Positions 1-43,800 of a stretch of 64,000 nt of DNA are shown in pieces. Position 1 is the stretch's first letter. Every line of letters starts with the position of its first letter. Below the pieces are notes generated by a model. It was not told the DNA's origin and searched no databases. It saw nothing but the letters and a program-made list of their open reading frames with translations. Location: the NCBI GenBank assembly GCA_964036045.1, contig OZ038378.1:30318001-30382000 (forward strand), read 5' to 3'. This DNA is from Eutreptiella sp. 'Long Island Sound 2002'. Lineage: Eukaryota; Protista; Euglenida. A program made the translations under genes and the position numbers.

Positions 1-3000
1 AGAGTGCTTTGGTGTCCTCTGATTCGGATCCTGACCCTCCCCTCGACCCTACCGTGGATTCCGACCCTGATGATGACTGTTGTGCAACATGCTGAGACCA
101 CAGCGGGCTCGAGCACATGCCTTCCATCGCCAATCCATTTGCCACCTCATTCCCCTGCACGTTGACATGTGCTGGGACATGCTCCCACCTGACTTCTCTT
201 CCTGGCGTCGCCATTTCCTGGAGCAGCATTTCCCAAACGGGAACGTGGACCTGCAGCTTACCAGACGTGGTTGTCCATCCCTTTGACTTCCAGTGTTGGG
301 CCCTGCCAGTCGCTCCCAGTTGTAGGTACTGTGAGTCGGTGAGGATTGCCAGTTTTGGCACCCATAACCCCTGTACGGCTTCTAGTGCTGCCCAAAGCTC
401 CGCTCCGTTGTGTGTTTGCCTGTGGCGTGTAGGTACGTAGCCGCAGAAACGCACCTCTGGTCCTTGCTCATCTTCCGCTGCGAATACGCCAAAGCCCCCG
501 GCCCTGGGTATGTCCTTGTGGCCCAGTCGTTTTGATGACCCGTCCGTGTACACAATCCTGTAACCCTTTGCAACCAGTTCTGCAATCAGATCTTGCACTC
601 CTTGTAGCACTCCCGGGCCTGCGTGCCTCGGGCGCTTCGGGCGTGTTTCTGTTTCCCTATGCCAACTGTGTTTGTCGGCTGTGCGCTCTTGCGTGAAGCA
701 CTCCGTGTGTGTTTGCCACCATGCACTCAATCCCCCATGTAGTCGTACTTCCCCTTGTCGCGGCTGCACTCCGGTATCTCGAAGTTGCTCCAGTGACTGC
801 TGGAAGCCTCTCCGCTGCTCCCTGCGCTCTCCTGAGTAAAACCCCACCCATTCACACAGCTCCCTAAGCCAGGTTGTTAGGTACGATATGAACACCGGCG
901 ATGCTCCTGCTTTGACTTCGCATCGGTATCGCCAGTGGGCACTTCTTGCCGACCACGTTGCCCAGCCTTGATTCGTGTTCAGGCAACCACTCCTGGTGGC
1001 CGGACTCCATCATGTCTCGGACTGCAGACTTCCCGTTCCCAGTTTCCACCGGGCCATAGTAGTGCTGTATCACCGCCGCCGCCGCTCTAAATATGGGGCA
1101 CTCGGCCATCGCGTGCTTGACCGTCTCCTTTTGAGAGCACACCGGGCACGTGACCGTGCCCGACCTCTTGTAGACTCTTGCATGCACAGTCAGTTTGTGC
1201 CACAGCACTTTTTGCGCAAAGTCCCGAACCCTCGGCGGTAGCTGAGCTTGTGCCCATTGCTCCCGTACCTCCGGTGTTTGTGGGTCGCCTACCCCCGGCT
1301 GAGAAGCGTAGAACTGAGGGAGCCATGCCCTGGTCCAGTTTTGGGCGTGGACTGCGGGGGTATCAAACCCCCCTTGTGACGGGAGTCGTCCGCCATGATT
1401 GTATATCCCTTTCCATGTTCGAGACAGTGCATTCAACAGCCTCACGTCCTCCAAGGATTGCAATTGACCCCACGTCAGCACTCCCTGCCGGATCATTTTC
1501 GTGTTGTAGTAGGAGTAGTTGAACTCATTTCGGAAGTACACATAGTGCCACAGTGGCAGATGGTCCCGGTTTGCCAGGGTGGCCGCTTGTGGGGCCACCC
1601 GTTGGATATGTGAGTGTGCCTTTGCCGACCATCCCAAGAACGTCAGCTCCGCCGTCCGGGCCATGCCCAACTGGATATATGGGAGGTTGTCTTTGGATGG
1701 TGTGAACCCGATGGTTGTCGCCCATGCATAGAAGGTCTCCACTGCCTTGTCGGGATACTTGTGAGGCTCTCCCAAGAGGCCGACGAACGGAGCCGCTGCC
1801 TGGTGCATGAGAAACAGCTCTGGCTCCGGCAGTGCCAGTCCCCCTTGCGTTCTTGGCCGTGAGAGGATTGGCAGAGTGATTCCCCAACTGTTGGTGCCCA
1901 TGGTCACGTGGTACACCGGCTTCAGCTGCCTGATCACTGAGATTGGGGCATAGTATGCCTTGGATACCCAGGCCACAACTGGCACCATCCATGATGTCAG
2001 CATGAAAGCACGTTCGTCCATCGACAACTGCAGCGTGGATACCACCCGTGCACAACGAAAGGCCTCTTGCAGTGCTGGTGCAAAAGCCTGCTCTACTGTC
2101 AGCCCCCATCCTTGGTCATCCTGGTGGTGCCGTATATTCCCCAAGCGTACACCCTGATACTTGACGAAGTTTTTGACGTCCACCCCAATGTCCCGAAAGC
2201 ACCTCGCCCACTCCATTCCCCCACAGGTGCGAACTATCGCCGCCGTTTTATTCAGGTTGACCTTCAGCCTAGGAAACTGTCCAAAGCAGGACACCACTTC
2301 CCATACCCTCCCCAGCAGCTGTGGGTTGGCCCGTGCGTCCAAGAAGATGATGAGGTCATCCGCATACATCATGATAGTCAGCCCTGGACCCAGGTCTTGT
2401 AGCGGGAAAATCACAAAAGATGCCACCAGGGAGAACAGTGCCGGGGAGAGTGGGTCTCCCTGGCGCGTTCCTGCACGCGGATGGTGGTAGACCCCTGGAG
2501 AATATCCCTTACCAACTGAGTACAGTTACGGTGCACGTAAAAGATGCAGTATCAGTCGGATGTACAGGAACGGTATGCACATTAGACCCAATGCCGCCGA
2601 CACCATCTCGTGAGACATCGTGGGGAACGCATTTCTGAAGTCCATTGACAACGCCTCTCCTTCACGTAAGCCATCCCAGAGAGCCCGTGACCCATAGACA
2701 TGCTCGAGGATACGTCTGTGACGAAGGAAACCCGTTTGCTGTGACGGGATGCAGTGGAGAAGTACATCCTCCAGCTGGATCAGGAGAATGTTGGTGAGCC
2801 ACTTCTGCCGTGTCGTTTGCAGCGCAATTGGTCGGAGAGAATTTGGCGTTTGCATCGCCTTTGTCTTGGGGATCATTGTCACCACGCCCGAAGTCCATGT
2901 CTCCGGCATGGTACCCGCGTCGAGGAAGCGTTTTAGTTACTCATACATTTGCGGCTCGAAAATTTCTGAGAACCTCTTGAAGAATTTTGCCGAGAAGCCC

Positions 3001-4564
3001 TCCAGTCCACGGGAGCTGTTGCTGTTCAACCTCTTGAGGCCTTCATGTACTATGTCCAGGGAAAGCTGCTTGAACAGGAGTCGACCTGCCTTGCACAGCC
3101 GTTGTTCCACTCCTAACGCCTTCAGATAGGCCATACATTCTTCCTCCGTGGCTCCCGTTGGGGTGAACACTTGATCCCAAAGTTCCACCAGCTCTTTGGC
3201 CACCGCCTTTGCTCCGCGTATTGCTGTGCCTCCCCGTGACACCAGCTGCTGAATTTTCTTTCGCTTATGCGGCTCCCGCATTAGCCGGCACAACTCGTTT
3301 CTTCGCGTTCTCATATCCCCTGACGTTTCCCCCGACGTGATCACCCCTTTGAGCTTGGAGAGTGTTTTCATGCCCGTTCTGTCACGCTGCGCCTTTTCAT
3401 ATACCCCAACAAGGAGGGTGTAGGCCGTTGCCGCTTGTGTCGCTGCAATTCCCAGTGATGAAAGAAATTGATAGACCGGTGTGACGGAGTCCCTTGTGGG
3501 GCCACGTAGGAGCCGTAGGGCTTGTAGTTCAACTGACTGTTTTTTGTTTTTGTGTTCCCTTTGGTAGCTGACCGCCTTCGTATGGATGCAGCCCAGTGCA
3601 TCTTCCTACCATTGGTCTCCCGTCGAGGTGATAGACTTGAGAGAGATCTCCAGATCTTCCATTGCCTCAGAGTCTTGGAGGATGGCCTCTGGGCAGTAGA
3701 ATGTAGGGATTGTGTCCTCCGTTTCGAAGGATGGGGATGTGAATTGAGCCGGGATTGCCTTGTGGTCCGAGTTGGCAGCAAACATGGGGTACACGCTGGG
3801 CGCCAAGCTCAACAAATCAGGCGTCGTGTGTATGCGGTCAATACGGCGTAATCTCTGCGGATCGAGCCGCTCTCCTTCTCGAGGGTAGCCGTATGTGAAG
3901 CCCGTTGGGCACGATGAATCTTTGTCCTTGATATCCGTCAGAGTTGGACAATGTATGTCCACCCAAACGTCCTGCAGACCCGCTCTCGGCAAGGCTGTAA
4001 CCTCCTGTTCTCGGGCATGTAAAGACGTGTCATGCTCAAACTTTGGGGCCACAAAGGCGTCCCGGTGTTTCACCACTAGACTATTGTGATTAGCACATAA
4101 AATGAGGTTCGGTTCATGTAACTCCTTGGCGATGTCTTTCCATTGTGACTGTCGTCGCGTGTGCTTGTGATGGAAGTGGGCCACCACTAAAGTGATCTCC
4201 AGTGGACCACTCGACAGTGAGGCTTTCAGCGCCCTGGAAGACAAGAACTTCATTGACTGTACGTCCACTTGGATGTTTTCCACGCCAATGCCACTCCTCC
4301 CCGTCCTTCTTCATGAAGTGGTCCGTCCAGGCCATACCCGTACTTTGATAAGCATTTCATGCCCGCTTGACGATCCTCCACTGTGACGAAGTGCGGCTCT
4401 TGGATGGCGAAGAAATCAACCTCTAGGGACCGAAGCAGTGACCCTAGGGCCACTATGCGTGTTTGCTTACACTTTCTCATGGTTATTTTCGTTTGAAATC
4501 CATTGATATTTTGGGACAATACTCTGAGCGTGCTGCTTAGAGGGATGCTTGATGCAGACGTCAT
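1..4564 (-). pseudogene. LINE ORF2 polyprotein: APE endonuclease (~3700-4564), reverse transcriptase (~2140-3010), zf-RVT-type finger (~1095-1230), RNase H (~125-560)
   Basis: Frameshifts near 4280 and ~985. In-frame stops at 3606, 2937 and 2526. After the ~985 shift the frame stays open to the window edge and encodes the RNase H. Confidence 0.93.
125..560 (-). pseudogene. RNase HI domain at the ORF2 C-terminus (not in the supplied ORF track)
   Basis: Manual translation: RIVYTDGSS...AGGFGVF...QTHNGAELWAALEAV...ILTDSQYL...HWKSKGWTTTSG...VWEMLL...WEHVPAHVNVQGNEVANGLA. The D, E, D and H motifs are present; the last Asp appears as Asn. Confidence 0.92.
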
Positions 4565-6225
4565 CGTGCTACTCCATTGGACGACGAAGCCTCATCCTCC
4601 TTCAAGTCCCGCTTGTGTTTGAGGGAGCTAATGACCTTGTCGACTTGGTCGTCCAACTCCATGGCCTTGGCCATTTCACCTGCCGTGATTAGGCCTTGCC
4701 TGCGTGTCTTTATGTCATCTCTGTTCCTGGGCCGGTCCGTGACACGCTTTTTTCGCGCCTCATAGTCCGCCTCGGAGATCACAAACATTGGAGGCATACC
4801 AGAATCCGACAGGTAGACTTTCCCAATCAGCTGTGACACACTTTCCCCGGTCAGCCGCCATGTGGCCGTGCGCATCTCCCCAACACTCCACCTGACACGG
4901 TCCGCGATATACCGGCACCGTACCGAAGGAGCAAGGGCCTCAGTCAGATCCGAGAGATACCACCAAGGTGCCACATCCAAGATGTACACTGTGCCCACCA
5001 GTTCCTTCTTCCACGTCGAGGGGACAGTGGGGTTGGAGATGATGTCTCTGTTGAGGAACTGTCCTGTCTTCAGGTCCTTGAAGACAGCCCCGATGGCAGG
5101 CACGAGTTCACGGTACCTTGTCTTCAACAGCGAGTGCCTGGTTTTTGCGAGACCCAGCAGTAGTTTACTGGGGCCCAACACATGGATTTTCACTGGCGAT
5201 TGCGCTTGCAAGACGCCCGGGATCGTCCAAAACATTGCGAGAATTGAGGCATACAGCATGGGGGACCATGTTTCCTTGTGTGTCTTCTTTATCCAGATCT
5301 CATAGACAGCAGACATGTTTGTCAAGTTGGCCCCACGATACCATTCCACTGGCTGGATCTGGAACCTTGGCTTGGATCCGAATTGTGATACCACGGTATT
5401 CACTTGTTCCTCATCCAGTTCTGTGAAGAACAGCTTCGAGTTCCGTGGGTCTGTTCCCGGAAAAAAATGGACTTCATCAGACTTCAAACCGATAGACCCC
5501 AACAGCCCGTTGATCAGGTCATTGTGGACCTGGATGGCGTACGGGGTATCCCGCACATCTAGTTCATGGAACACCACCTTGTCAACCTCTGCCCCAGGTG
5601 TCATAAGCCGCAGGACCTTGTACGTTGGGGGCGGCGACAGGTTCCTGGAGCCCCTTGTGCTACTCGCGATCCAGACATCAAATCAACCATGTGTGCGTAT
5701 GTGCATGAGAGACCTCTCTGCCATTTGCAGCTTGTCGCACCCGAATGGCAAGTTGGAGTTGAGAGCGAGTGCCCGATTGAGAAACGATGGCTTGTCATCA
5801 TCGTCGCTGACAGGTTCAAGCAGGATGGCAACAAAGCGGCCCAACATGGGCAGATCAGCAAGCAGCCTCTTAATTGCATTTTGAATTTTTGCATACTCAG
5901 TCATTTCCCCAAGGAGCACAACGTTGGGGCAACTGCCGTAAAGGACGGCAGCTAGTTTTTCGGACGAGTCGCAGTCCTTGAAGAGGTCGTACGACAGGGA
6001 GGCAGCCTCTGGAACTCCACTCTTCAGCACCACTTCGTCCTCGATGATGTAATCTGCATCATCGATGGCTGCCAAACACGCCAATTGACCGGCATCAGCA
6101 GGGACGATGACCTCCTCACCTGGCGTGGCCAGACGGGCCTGGGTGTCCCGGACACCCATGCGGTCAGGGGACAGGGAGGTGACGTCGGCGGCAGTTTGTC
6201 AAGGCCCAGCGGCCCGGGCAAGCAT
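4561..6225 (-). pseudogene. LINE ORF1 (about 555 codons, two internal TGA stops; possible RRM-like segment)
   Basis: ATG 6225, the 5683..6159 ORF and the 4561..5604 ORF share one frame, broken only by TGA at 6199-6201 and 5683-5685. The ORF1 stop overlaps the ORF2 start (ATGA at 4561-4564). TVYILDVAPWWYLSDLTEAL resembles an RRM start (weak). Confidence 0.8.
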
Positions 6226-6239
6226 GGACAAAAAGACAC

Positions 6240-6265
6240 CGAAAAAAAATAGACACTCAGAAAGT
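6240..6265 (-). other. Genomic copy of the 26-nt euglenid spliced-leader (SL) exon at the LINE 5' terminus
   Basis: Reverse complement of 6240-6265 is ACTTTCTGAGTGTCTATTTTTTTTCG, identical to the Euglena gracilis SL exon as I recall it. It is followed by 14 nt and then the ORF1 ATG at 6225. Confidence 0.9.
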
Positions 6266-7239
6266 GCGGGGGGGGGGGGGGGGCAGTGGAGGAGGTTAGT
6301 GGTGGGGTAGACGTTTTCAAACCCCTAACTTCAACTTCCCCGCCCCCGTGCTGCGACATGACCCCTAAGAGGGAGTCAACCGTTTTGGAGCGGGGATAAG
6401 GCGGACGGCCCTCAGCTCGGGGGGGCAGCCGCAACTGGTGCCACACATCCGTCGTCCCCCTTCTGGCGGAGAGGACCCGGATGTGGATGAGGGTGGGGAA
6501 GGGGTCCAAACCTTTTGCCCACTCCACCACCTCCCCCACTAGCAGGGGCCCCGTGTATGTGGCCTCCTGCGGCGTGTGCGGGCGACGGTAAGGGCCAGGA
6601 AGTGGGCGTGGGTGTCAGCGGCTCCGTCCATAAGGCTACCATGTTGCGAGAGAGCCAAATGCAAGAGAAATGAGAGCTGCATAGGGCAACAAAAGCATGG
6701 AAAGGAGCGGAACTTGAAAAACGTTGGACATATTCGCGCGATTGTAGCGCGATATTGGAATGAATGGAAATTACATGCGAATGCAACTGATACATGCGAC
6801 CGAGACGTGCAAATATGCACGCAAATTTAACTTTTTTTTGCGAATCCAAGCGATAACAGCTACCACTCGGGCTACATTTTGCGTGCCTTCAATCTTCTTT
6901 AATGTTTGGCGAAGTAAGCACGGCAAACGGGCAAACGGGCACGGAATAACGGGCAAAACGGGCCAAAAGTCAGCGATGTGCGCATGTTCATTCAGGAGTG
7001 CGGTTCGCAAAGGCTACATGGGCGAGTATGGGGCGGGACTAGTGGGAGTGGGTGTCGGCAACGGGATCCAGCAAGGAACCCAGCCCAGACAAGTGTTGCG
7101 ACATGTCAGAAACAAAGCTCTGTTGCACGGGGTAAACACGTGTGACATGAATGTGAGATTTGTGCTAAATTCGTGCCAAAATCGTGCAAAATTCGTACTA
7201 AATGCACTTTCGTCTAAATCGTGTGAATGATCTCCGAAT

Positions 7240-7701: not shown

Positions 7702-9508
7702 CACGCCAGACCCAATTTGGTTCTAGCCTAGATGGCGCTAAAAGGCTAGAACGAAAAAAAGAGGGGGTTACCCCCACCTGTGGGGGTCAAGGGTGGGAGA
7801 TATGAGGGATCCAACTTGGATTCCCTTATCCGTACTTGGGGGCCTAGGGCTTGCTTTTCACAATTTCAGCGTTTTGACCTGAAAACGGAATGGAAAAGGT
7901 TTTGTTGTAGCGACGTTCTAGCGACGGTCTAGCGCCGCTCCCTAGAACGGCGCTAGAACATCTAGTCTAGAACGAAACTAGAACAAAAACATTGAAAAAT
8001 TTCAGCAAGCTAAAGACACCAATGTGTGTGTGGGAGGGGTTCCATGATACACACACATGGAAACGAACATAGTGGGCGCATGTATATGCCTATGTGCCCC
8101 CCCCCCCCCCCCACACACACAATTTGGCATAGAAACAACACACAACATACGATGTTGATGGGAAGCGTGGAGCAAGACACCGACCACAAGCACCGCACAA
8201 ACACCCCCTGAGTGTCGAGCTATCAGCCCCCCCCCCCCCCCCGCTTTCCATGCTGTGGTTTGGGGTGTGGGGCTACGGTGCTTGTTGTGCTTAAGGTTAG
8301 GGCGGGTATCCATTACCTTTTTGCAGGTGTGCTTTTGTTTTTTGAAACGGTTGACTTCATAATTGCAGTAAGAAGTGCGTACACAGTGACACCAAGAGGT
8401 AGGTGTGTTACTCCTTCCCTCCTCACCGCCATGTGTGTCTGTGGTTTGGGGTTGTGTACTGTACTGCTGTACTGTCAGGAGCTGTGCTTTGTGGGTCAGT
8501 GGTATGCTTTGTCCCCCCGCCTCCCAGGTTATGGGACCGCCCCCCCTTTGTTTGCACCGGTACCTGGCTTGTTGGTTGGTTGGCTGTTGGTTTTCGGGTT
8601 GCTTGGTTGGTTGTTGGGTTGGTTGGTTGGTTGTTGGACAGGTGAGTTTGGCTGGTTGGTTGGTTGGTTGGTTGGTTGCGTGGTTGGTTGGTTGTTTGCT
8701 AGTTGCTGGGGTGTATGTGTGTTTGTGCACAGGTGCTGTAGCATTGTATGTGGTGTTGGGTTGGGTGTTTGTGTGTGTGTGTGTTGCCTGGACAGGTGCT
8801 GTGTGGTGTTGTTGCACAGTGTGTCTGTGTGTAAGCATGCCTGTGCAACCATTGCAAGGGTCTCTGCGGTGTTTTGCACATTTCATTTTGGCCTTATTCC
8901 AGGTTTTCAAACGCTCCCCTCAGCCCCTCAAAGCTGGGATTTTCTCGCGAGGTGTTCTAGCGGCGTTCTAACGCCGTTCTAGCGGTGCCGCTTGCTTCAC
9001 TCGCTAGGACGTCGCTAGAACACCCCGCTAGAACGCTGCTAGAACAGCGGAATGAAATCTGCACAACCCCCCCAAAGACCCTTGCAATGGTTGCACAGGC
9101 ATGCTTACACAGAGACGGATTGTGAAACAACACCACAGAGCATGTGTCCAGGCAACACACACACATACACCCCAGCAACTAGCCATCAACCAGCCAACCA
9201 CGCAACCAACCAACCAACCAACCAACCAACCAGCGAAACTCGGCTGTCCAACAACCAACCAACCAACCCAACAACCAACCAAGCAACCCGAAAACCAACA
9301 GCCAACCAACCAACAAGCCAGGTACCAGTGCAGACAGAGTGGGGGGGGATTCCATAACCTGCGAGGAGGGGGGACAAAGCATACTACTTACCCACACAGC
9401 ACAGTGCATAACCCAGCCGGGCGGGGGGGGGGGGGGAGCAAGGGAGGAACGATGGTGGGAAGGGGGGACCTGTACACTAGACAACCCCACACCACAGATA
9501 GGCGGAGG
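7702..9508. mobile_element. Fold-back non-autonomous DNA element, copy 1 (right end truncated; opposite orientation to copy 2)
   Basis: Starts gTA|CACGCCAGA. Arrays of GCTAGAAC/GTTCTAGC at 7710-7985 and 8950-9050. Arms ~8000-8950 and ~9050-9508 are inverted and contain (AACC)n and (AC)n tracts. Homologous to the reverse complement of 41122-43379. Confidence 0.85.
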
Positions 9509-40849: not shown

Positions 40850-43800
40850 TCACACCCTGTCCAGTGGCTTCATGGCAAACCCGCGAACTTGAGGTAAAGG
40901 AGCCGTGTAACCATGGAAAAGAGTTGTCACTTCCTCTGCCGAAAGACCAGGCACGTCTTCAAGGTACAGATCCTGATGAGGGGGCTTCGCTGCGACGATC
41001 TCCCAGTGAAACTTGTTGTGGGCCGCATTGACCTCTTGTTGTAGCTCGTCGATGATGTCGATTGATTCTTGCCCGAGAACGTATGACCAACGTCAATTTG
41101 AGTCCTCCCCATCCCTAAGTACACGCTAGAACACCCAATGTTGTTCTAGCCCAAAACATCTAGACTAGATGTTCTAGAGTAGAATGGCTGTAGCCTAGAA
41201 CACAAATCGTTCTAGCCTGGAGTGGTAGAATAGGTAGAACATAAAAAAACAAATTATCACAGTGGGTCGGGGGGCGCATGACACACACACACTCATAGCA
41301 ACCAACACACTTGACGCATGCATACGCATATGCCCCCCCCCCCCCAGCATACATACAGTTTTGCAAAAGCATATGCACAACAGATCACACAACATACAAT
41401 GTCAAGGGTGGGGAGGGTGGGTAAGAGGCCAAACACAAGCTCCGCACAAACACCCCTTCAGTGTTGAGCTATCAGCCCCCCCCCCCTTCCATGTTGTGGT
41501 CTGGGTTGTTGGGCCCCTGCTTGTTGTGCTTAAGGTTAGGGAGGGTATCCGTTTCCTCTTTGCAGGTGTGCTGGTTTTTTTTGATTGGGGTGAAGAAGTG
41601 GGTGCACAATGACACCAAGAGGTAGGTGTGTTACTCCTTCCCTCCTCCCTGCCATGTGTGTCTATGGCATGGGGTTGCCTAGTGTAGAGGTCCCCCCTTC
41701 CCACCATCCCTCCTCCCTTGCCCCACCCCCCCCCCCCTTCGAGCTGGGTTATGCACTGTGTTGTGCGGGTCAGTGGTATGCTTTGTCCCCCCTCCTCCTA
41801 GGTTATGGAGTCCCCCCCACTCTGTGTGCACTAGTACATGCCTTGTTGGCTGGTTGGCTGTTGGTTTTCGGGTTGCTTGGTTGGTTGTTGCGTTGGTTGG
41901 TTGGTTGTTGGTTGATCGGTTCTGGCACAGCTGAGTTTGGCTGGTTGGTTCGTTGGTTGGTTGGTTCGTTGGTTGGTTGGTTGGTTGGTTGGTTCGTTGG
42001 TTGGTTCGTTGGTTGGTTTGTTGTTGGCTAGTTGCTGGGGTGCATGTGTGTGTATTGTCTGGACACATGCTGTGTGGTGTTGTTGCACAATGTGTCTCTG
42101 TGTAAGCATGCCTGTGCAGCCATTGCAAGGCTCTTTGGGGGGGTTGTACACATTTCACCTGGCGTTCTAGCGGCGTTCTAGCGAGGTGTTCTCGCGGCGT
42201 TCTAGGGAGCGAAGCGGCGCCGCTAGAACGCCGCTAGAACGCCAAAACGAAATGTGCACAACCCCCCCCCCCCCCAGGACCTTTGCAATCGCTGCACATA
42301 CATGCTTACACACAGACACAGTGTGCAACAAAACCACACAGCACGTGTCCAACAAACACACATACACCCCACCCAACACCATCTACAATGCTACAACACC
42401 TGTGCACACACCCCCGCAACTAGCCAACAAACAACGAACCATGCAACCAACCAACCAACCAACCACCCAGCCAAACTCAGCTATCCAAGAACCCATCCAC
42501 CAACAACCAACCAACGAACCCAACAACCAACCAAGCAACCCGAAAACCAACAGCCAACCAACCAACAAGCTAGGTACCAGTGCACACAGGGGGGGGGGGG
42601 GTTGCATAACCTGGGAGAACGGGGGACAAAGCATACCACTGACCAACATAGCACAGCTCCTGACACTACAGCAAAACACTAGGTAACCCCATACCACAAA
42701 CACACATGGCAGGGAGGAGGGAAGGAGTAACACATCTACCTCTTGGTGTCACCGTGTACCCACTTCTTCACCCCAATCAAAAAAACCAGCACATCTGCAA
42801 AGAGGAAATGGATACCCTCCCTTAAGCAAAACAAGCACGGGCCCCACAACCCAGACCACAACATGGAAAGGGGGGGGGGGCTGATAGCTCGACACTCAGG
42901 GGGTATTTGTGCGGTGCTTGTGCTCGACCTCTTGGCCCCCCCTCCCCCCCGTGACATCTTGTGCTGTGTGTTGTGTTGTGCATATGCCTATGCCAAAGTG
43001 TGTGGGGCGGGGGGGCACATATGCCTATGCATGCGTCAAGTGTGTTGGTTTTTATTCGTGTATGTGTATTACCCCTCCACCCCACCCCCACTTTGGTGTC
43101 CCTTAGATGCGACAAATGCATGAATGTTTTTGTTCTAGTTGTGTTCTAGGCTAGAACGTCGCTAGAACGAAATCATTTGCACTCCGAAATCAGGTGAAAA
43201 CACTGAAATTATGAAAAAACAAGCATGGGCCCCCGAGTACGGATAGGGGGGTCCAAGTTGAAACCCCCAAAGCCCCCCCCCCCCCCCACCTCCACGGGGA
43301 GGGGGTAACCACCTCTTTTTTTTCGTTCTAGCCACTCTAGCGGCGTCTAGGCTAGAACGAGATTGCGTCTTCTAGCGTGTACCAAGGGATGTGCCTCCAA
43401 CGGTGTGGTACCGTCTGCCCCCTTGACACGGTCGTCGTGCACGCCAGTAAGTAGTGGTGGTGGTAGAGAGGGGATGGTAATGGAGTCGTTGTTGTGCGTC
43501 ACCCATAGCCCAGCAGACGTTGTTCCTGACCCATGTTCACTCCATTGGTGAGGGAAGTCACTTCGGAGGGAGTACACGGGACTTGACAAACTTGCATCCT
43601 TCTCCATGGACAGGCAAAGGCGGTGCTGCAAAGGTCCTTGCCATGATGTGTTTTTCCGAGAGGCCCCTTGGGGGGCATCTGCTCGGAGGTCCAGGCACCC
43701 GTCGTCATCCAGGTTCTCGAGGTACATCGTCTCCTGGCAGCCATTCCCATCCACGGTAGCTTGGGCATACTCAAATAGGTGCTCCAGGTCTTCGCCACTG

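Follow-up and report, generated by a model that had tools for sequence, protein, structure and literature searches.

Features of the locus

The window, meaning the whole 64-kb stretch of DNA that was analysed, carries on its minus strand the larger part of a LINE copy headed by the spliced leader (SL). The copy is 8,395 nt long and runs past window base 1 by 2,130 nt, which places its 3' end outside the window as the preliminary description of this DNA had claimed. No other fragments of the same LINE family were found within the window. The features are listed here from the upstream flank to the 3' end of the element.

6268..6283 (-): 16 consecutive C (G16 on the + strand), bordering the duplicated target bases on their upstream side
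6266..6267 (-): GC, the terminal non-C bases of the 5' target-site duplicate, C(n)GC
6240..6265 (-): SL, 26 nt, exact by sequence match, the 5' terminus of the inserted unit
6226..6239 (-): 14-nt leader GTGTCTTTTTGTCC, resembling SL bases 10-26; probable SL ancestry
6199..6225 (-): upstream ORF of eight codons and a stop (MLARAAGP-stop), opened by the ATG at 6225 and kept in nearly all copies
4561..6159 (-): ORF1, 532 codons in intact copies, without a known family; interrupted in the window copy by a stop at 5685-5683
3606..4564 (-): APE-type endonuclease part of ORF2, in two frames in the window copy; Pfam match below cut-off
864..2909 (-): reverse transcriptase and zf-RVT zinc-binding region of ORF2, in pieces; Pfam
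2..550 (-): RNase H domain of ORF2; E 4e-21
1..6265 (-): in-window portion of the LINE copy as a whole; the rest lies at G000:C1:30315871-30318000 and ends ...CCTCATGGCCC, without poly(A)

The exact euglenid SL exon that had been reported here is confirmed over 26 of 26 nt. The 26-mer ACTTTCTGAGTGTCTATTTTTTTTCG reads from 6265 to 6240 on the minus strand and is the sole match within the window even with up to three mismatches. None of 100 shuffled sequences matched the SL with three mismatches permitted. The same sequence is the invariant E. gracilis SL according to PMC6242988, and the SL-specific primer of PMC5654406 has two extra 5' bases, AC. The SL is not followed by an SL-RNA intron, and an Rfam scan of the whole 64-kb window returned no family at gathering score, hence no 5S rRNA, in agreement with the earlier statement that neither an intron nor a 5S array is present. 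A search of the 5' region against Rfam for ribozymes, HDV-like or other, and for SL-RNA families yielded chance-level matches only. Beyond the GC and the run of 16 C, the DNA upstream of the SL is unrelated.

The preliminary description had the SL abutting a 14-nt UTR and the ORF1 ATG. The 14 nt and the ATG at 6225 are as described, but this ATG opens the short upstream ORF and not ORF1. The true ORF1 start is at 6159, 66 nt past the upstream ATG, so the leader after the SL is 80 nt long. Its first 14 nt have GTGTCT and a T run in common with SL bases 10-26 and are probably the decayed relic of an earlier SL. The related families represented by L027 and L020 have clearer SL relics ahead of TCCATG.

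Both main reading frames are damaged in the window copy, ORF1 by a stop at codon 159 and ORF2 by being scattered over several frames. ORF1 ends and ORF2 begins within a shared ATGA (4564-4561, minus strand), which suggests coupled termination and re-initiation. ORF1 had no Pfam, PDB or Atlas match, its relatives occur in Euglena assemblies only, and its AlphaFold model (mean pLDDT 35) was unusable. The endonuclease part of ORF2 matches the Pfam family Exo_endo_phos with an E-value of 8e-4 and 19.7 bits against a cut-off of 24.5, over profile positions 1-84 only. A PDB sequence search with this part gave no match. Its language-model look-alikes in the Atlas score 0.91-0.93 and are Exo_endo_phos and endonuclease-RT clusters; all ten best have Exo_endo_phos families in common. 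The sub-threshold match and the look-alikes together point to an APE-like enzyme N-terminal to the reverse transcriptase, as had been claimed. RVT_1 was found in the window pieces and reaches an E-value of 2e-24 in copy L092. The domains C-terminal to the reverse transcriptase are zf-RVT and RNase H, and no Pfam endonuclease domain was found there in the pieces scanned. The window element is best explained as a decayed copy of an autonomous non-LTR retrotransposon with ORF1, a probable APE endonuclease, a reverse transcriptase, a zinc-binding region and RNase H.

The SL at the 5' ends of the LINE family

With up to one mismatch allowed, the SL matches the 2.28-Gb genome at 4,728 places. About 350 of these carry the SL-leader junction of this LINE, the window copy among them, and about 1,360 have the SL-RNA intron downstream. 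Among the first 30 SL loci on the contig, those of neither kind stand at the front of other repeat families or, in at least one case, of a host-like gene. Statements about the whole family mostly rest on such pattern counts plus approximately 35 copies. The 5' ends of LINE copies were collected and inspected as had been proposed: 29 of 34 start with the whole SL, give or take one base, five are cut inside the SL or the leader, and none has other element-specific sequence upstream of the SL. The upstream flanks differ among the 34 copies read, two segmental duplicates excepted. In a second assembly, 258 ORF1 sequences fall into a single cluster at the 90% identity level, and its representative has the full 532 aa. 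The metagenome contigs scanned for the SL-leader junction gave no matches.

The preliminary description derived the junction from an SL-trans-spliced LINE RNA that was then fully reverse-transcribed. The SL does belong to the RNA that was reverse-transcribed, but it is no one-off capture: it forms the lasting 5' end of a family of about 350 copies. The SL has diverged by 2.6% and the body by 3.0%; these values are equal in effect and fit the rival models alike.

Some SL-headed loci are of other kinds. L009 (G000:C1:836637, minus strand) has the SL ahead of an open frame of 445 aa that encodes a C-type lectin domain (E 7e-8), and resembles a host-type gene whose trans-spliced mRNA was copied back into DNA. 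Two further abundant SL-headed repeat families begin SL+ATTGACCCTCAG... and SL+ATTGCCCCTTCAG... (loci L015, L016, L022, L023, L024, L029 and L030; and L017 and L019). These have long open frames, no Pfam matches and no upstream C run.

The roughly 1,360 SL-RNA genes form loose arrays with a spacing of kilobases to tens of kilobases, for example at G000:C3:164.04-164.72 Mb, C9:0-1.0 Mb and C1:0-0.46 Mb. The eight true SL-RNA loci that were read have a conserved upstream sequence common to all, and the two that were scanned both have a 5S rRNA gene about 500 nt upstream. An element that inserts site-specifically into SL-RNA genes, in the manner of SLACS, CZAR, CRE and NeSL, would also come to adjoin an SL, which would then be target DNA. 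However, the flanks of the LINE copies differ from one another and lack the conserved upstream sequence of SL genes, neither the SL intron nor the 5S gene is present, the whole SL lies inside the target-site duplication (see below), and the endonuclease is APE-like. No fusion of an SL-gene promoter with the SL and the LINE was found in the genome. The junction was thus checked for SL-gene repeats behind it, which the preliminary description had named as grounds for refuting its reading, and the unrelated flanks, the absent intron and 5S gene and the SL within the duplication refute insertion into SL genes, which is left with next to no probability.

The SL could also have been joined to the LINE by a reverse transcriptase that jumps from the 5' end of the LINE RNA to an SL-bearing RNA (cf. 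U6/L1 chimeras), or by an assembly or cDNA artefact. Filler bases at some 5' junctions would suit such a chimera. Against it, a single invariant junction occurs in all of the approximately 350 copies, the exon part alone of the SL RNA is present, and the family is also found in the second assembly and in contigs of other runs. A chimeric or artefactual origin is accordingly very improbable.

Target-site duplications, 3' end and C run

The preliminary description proposed to look for a target-site duplication around the full element, including the 3' end beyond the window. Both ends were obtained for 12 copies, and in 10 of these pairs a direct repeat lies beside the termini, with the SL enclosed. 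The repeat starts directly after CATGG and ends at SL base 1 in seven of the 12 pairs, and is parted from the SL by 10-15 nt of filler in three (L089, L088, L032). In the remaining two copies (L050, L054) the termini match through C runs only. Examples of the non-C parts of the duplication are GGACGGC, ACACACA, AAAGGA and TATGGACCAT. The window copy has C(n)GC on both sides; its 3' duplicate, CCCCCGC, follows the last CATGG outside the window. The position of the SL inside the target-site duplication, and not as part of an SL-RNA gene, bears out the earlier proposal that the SL was on the LINE RNA that was reverse-transcribed.

The 3' terminus of the LINE is CATGGCCC, without poly(A) or an A run. 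All 19 of the 3' ends examined read ...CCTCATGGCCC or a near variant and then pass into target DNA. A poly(A) or A-rich 3' tail is common to many, though not all, LINE clades. The 3'-terminal 90 nt fold no better than shuffled sequences (z 0.13). The 3' neighbour of the window LINE (G000:C1:30315001-30315870; L061 1-870) is an older relative, 74.6% identical to positions 5256-6124 of the element, and is 5'-truncated exactly at the insertion point of the window copy, which is its 5' junction.

Ten of the 12 paired copies have 11-17 consecutive C immediately before the 5' repeat. The 3' duplicate has 3-7 C only, fused with the element's own terminal C. In an 84-nt satellite, the C run is about 4-6 nt long in 14 empty units versus 15 C in the unit that hosts L041; therefore a short run of C appears to be what is targeted, and it gains about 10 C where the first nick is made. 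The extra C may come from the polymerase that fills in the duplication, if it slips or adds a tail. This repeat of about 84 nt (...GCTCTGAAGCGGTGGGGACCCCCTAGGCGG...) is a recurrent landing site: of about 36 LINE copies, three have inserted into its short C run or next to it; the loci are L033, L041/L079, L093, L076 and L099. Homopolymers of at least 10 nt in the 64-kb window comprise 31 C/G runs versus 7 A/T runs. Several of these C/G runs occupy the same place in diverged copies of other repeats and differ in length there (8227-8242 vs 41476-41486).

Identical short stretches also occur upstream of the SL before different SL-headed elements, namely C(n)TTGCATAGT and CCCTTGCAAT-C16/17-GGGAGAC. 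The pairs L025/L094 and L095/L096 are unrelated loci with different SL-headed elements, and in each pair the short segment that separates the SL from the C run is identical. In L095 a C run with a short segment is stacked three times. These segments could be a recurrent target motif, carried-over parental flank or the trace of longer SL donors. The 3' ends of four copies with common upstream segments were absent from the places predicted for them.

Stacked SL relics and re-trans-splicing

Trans-splicing at the AG inside an encoded SL is expected to yield SL + TGTCTATTTTTTTTCG. The genome contains 92 exact tandem SL relics, most of which have this form and are cut just after the internal AG; a second class of stacked relics starts AGTGTC. 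Some sites have three-layer SL stacks, e.g. C1:55396076, C5:86359046 and C10:43091977. L010 (G000:C1:1042703-1042774, minus strand) is a head-to-tail stack at a C run in which the LINE 3' end ...CATGGCCCCC stands directly before a full SL. The full SL is followed by a near-full second SL with an extra AC, a truncated relic (AGTGTC...) as the third SL layer, and then another element.

The preliminary description suggested that the LINE recycles the SL, with host read-through of SL-headed copies and a new SL trans-spliced, possibly at the internal AG of the old one, in each generation. The tandem relics found genome-wide show the expected cut, the 14-nt leader resembles an old relic, the upstream C run would act as a pyrimidine tract, and a contig from an RNA library spans the flank-LINE junction of another copy (see below). 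Yet each round would add a 16-nt relic, and this LINE family has one exact double-SL copy among about 350. An SL joined at the next downstream AG, 126 nt from the start, was not found in the family either. No AG-free stretch of the element exceeds the 115 nt between SL base 10 and +126; given the low A content this is weakly significant, with 8.8% of shuffles likewise AG-free over it. Re-trans-splicing at the SL-internal AG as the main route is therefore not upheld and must be rated improbable in the extreme, though slightly less so than a chimeric origin. The 14-nt leader relic is likely to record one ancient round of re-trans-splicing and not the present route.

Source copies of the family

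Another possibility is that a single master locus, or a small number of them, retains a true outron and an AG acceptor and has the SL added to its RNA afresh each time; all SL-headed copies would then be dead on arrival. This would be the simplest route to an exact SL junction. It would also agree with a comb-like tree, and trans-splicing of transposon RNAs has been reported for Hydra (PMC12220107). A master should have AG directly before the leader, but an exact 25-mer search of the genome found no such junction; it found 15 copies with TG and two with GG, which are expected from decay of the final CG of the SL. The single AG that a 19-mer search returned lies in a copy that is truncated at its 5' end and has lost 13 nt that the family retains. 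These searches covered the 2.28-Gb assembly, and a master that lies outside it or is changed at the 19 searched bases would escape them.

The tree and the reading frames also bear on the master loci. In a maximum-likelihood tree of 29 copies over 1.48 kb, made from the best matches to the window copy and not from a random sample, the end branches are 0.01-0.035 throughout and are not longer toward the base of the comb, as opposed to what master loci would leave. Root-to-tip distances range from 0.09 to 0.20 and no rooting renders the tree clock-like; therefore the backbone is not a single locus decaying at the neutral rate. Several sub-lineages are 4-8% apart in ORF1, each with young copies, which also speaks against one or a few masters. 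The ORF1 parts are open in the consensuses of three sub-lineages, and the codon differences between these are mostly synonymous (synonymous to non-synonymous 68:15, 85:16 and 46:3). The 80-nt leader differs at 2, 2 and 0 bases and is more conserved than the synonymous sites. Since change in ORF1 is mostly synonymous and the leader is nearly invariant, the lineages diverged as working elements with the SL-leader constrained. The SL thus appears to be a long-standing heritable front end, kept through the sub-lineages under purifying selection.

Retrotransposition is the only way for new source loci to arise, and its products are SL-headed; therefore the SL-headed copies are probably the propagating form, a reading held with moderate confidence. 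Master loci that acquire the SL anew are unlikely, although they have more in their favour than the other alternatives.

RNA contigs

The LINE is covered by contigs from three runs, which bear two organism labels between them, and depth in the SL bin is very high. Contigs also contain the unique flank at 6284-6500 without differences. No contig bridges the G16 at the flank-SL junction of the window copy because the homopolymer breaks contigs. The loose ends of contigs beyond the SL are diverse and rich in G runs, which matches the prediction from other copies. An estuary metatranscriptome (run X1), the one RNA library among the runs, contains SL-ended mRNA contigs, a 356-nt contig of a related LINE copy and a 194-nt contig that crosses the exact flank-LINE junction of copy L035/L036. 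The 485-Mb run is too small for such depth on a two-copy DNA locus in a 2.3-Gb genome, so the 194-nt contig makes read-through RNA across the L035/L036 junction likely.

Proposed mechanism

Trans-spliced RNAs get reverse-transcribed in euglenids, and this LINE family is a direct record of it. The best explanation, and a probable one, is that the RNA intermediate of the LINE has the host SL at its 5' end, that every full-length insertion starts with the SL inside the duplication, and that SL-headed copies serve as the sources of new ones. During integration, the endonuclease would nick a short G run and the G-ended primer would pair with the terminal CCC of the RNA. Reverse transcription would proceed to the first base of the SL, the top-strand cut would fall within about 10 nt on the downstream side of the C run, and the C run would grow by about 10 nt at the nick. 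The SL would then be a heritable front end of the element, and the SL-headed copies would themselves act as sources.

SL-headed DNA has CG and not AG before the leader; therefore a fresh SL could not be spliced there by the usual rule. Most simply, the SL on the next RNA would be copied from the DNA, which needs a 5' end at SL base 1. With the C that usually precedes it, the SL begins CA(+1)CTTT and so resembles an initiator. Initiation at the SL, using this initiator-like sequence and the conserved 80-nt leader, is favoured over repeated trans-splicing on these sequence features. A more specific and tentative suggestion, which is less likely to be right than the explanation as a whole, is that the SL and the 80-nt leader together act as an internal promoter or initiator that travels with the element and was borrowed from the SL-RNA gene system. 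RNA polymerase would then start at SL base 1 of every new copy. The upstream C run made by the element may contribute to it. If this is true, the LINE would be fully autonomous in a genome otherwise reliant on trans-splicing, and its RNA would pass for processed host mRNA.

Comparison with known systems

The literature searched contains no description of LINEs headed by an SL, from Euglena or from any other organism. The nearest parallel is in dinoflagellate retrogenes, where DinoSL relics stand before host genes (PMC5585692, PMC6050394; preprint 10.1101/783902). The preprint (10.1101/783902) finds that genes with DinoSL relics and genes encoding reverse transcriptase do not overlap in function, and it treats retrotransposition separately. 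In both cases a full SL is encoded in the DNA at the 5' end of an intron-less retro-copy, and tandem relics cut at the SL-internal AG occur in the present genome as well. Unlike the dinoflagellate host-gene relics, the SL here belongs to an autonomous LINE lineage that carries it singly and stably without poly(A), and this family lacks stacked relics apart from the one double-SL copy.

SLACS/CZAR/CRE and NeSL-1 are site-specific in SL-RNA genes and have a restriction-like endonuclease. They resemble the present case as retroelements beside SL sequence in a trans-splicing organism; however, this LINE is dispersed, is probably of the APE type and has the SL within its own duplication. L1Tc/ingi are euglenozoan elements with the APE-RT-RNase H layout that this LINE probably has as well, and in them the first bases solve the promoter problem. 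SNAP50 serves the transcription of SL-RNA genes. The Pr77 sequence of the trypanosomatid L1Tc is reported to bind TBP and SNAP50 (PMC1874656, PMC8190864). Pr77 is specific to its element and the L1Tc RNA is unspliced, whereas the first 26 bases of this LINE are the SL and are a candidate promoter only. In Hydra, transposon RNAs are reported to receive the host SL at the RNA level, and the passages that deal with the SL name no SL-headed genomic copies (PMC12220107), whereas the SL of this LINE is found in genomic copies.

Other features have counterparts among LINEs at large. R2 and LINEs of the stringent type are tail-less and their 3' end pairs with the nicked target, while jockey and I of Drosophila have internal promoters and start at base 1 of the element. 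This LINE resembles the former in having no poly(A) and in the proposed pairing of its 3' end, and the latter in its favoured start at base 1. To our knowledge, neither the lengthening of a C run on the 5' side nor a host SL as the first bases has been described in tail-less or internal-promoter LINEs.

Significance

The new elements of this work are the family census, the SL-enclosing duplications, the tail-less 3' end that would be primed at C, the lengthening of the C run and the evidence, drawn from selection, that SL-headed copies propagate. For the reverse transcription of trans-spliced RNA, the literature searched describes dinoflagellate host genes only. LINEs must rebuild their 5' end in every generation, and the solutions include internal promoters, ribozymes and insertion into transcribed genes. 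A host mRNA tag as the first 26 bases of a long-lived, selected LINE lineage is a further kind of solution to this problem. The LINE also offers a test system for the start sites of RNA polymerase II in Euglena, which are poorly known. In addition, the C-run data suggest that scars left by inserting LINEs of its kind may be a source of some of the very numerous C/G homopolymer runs in this 2.3-Gb genome.
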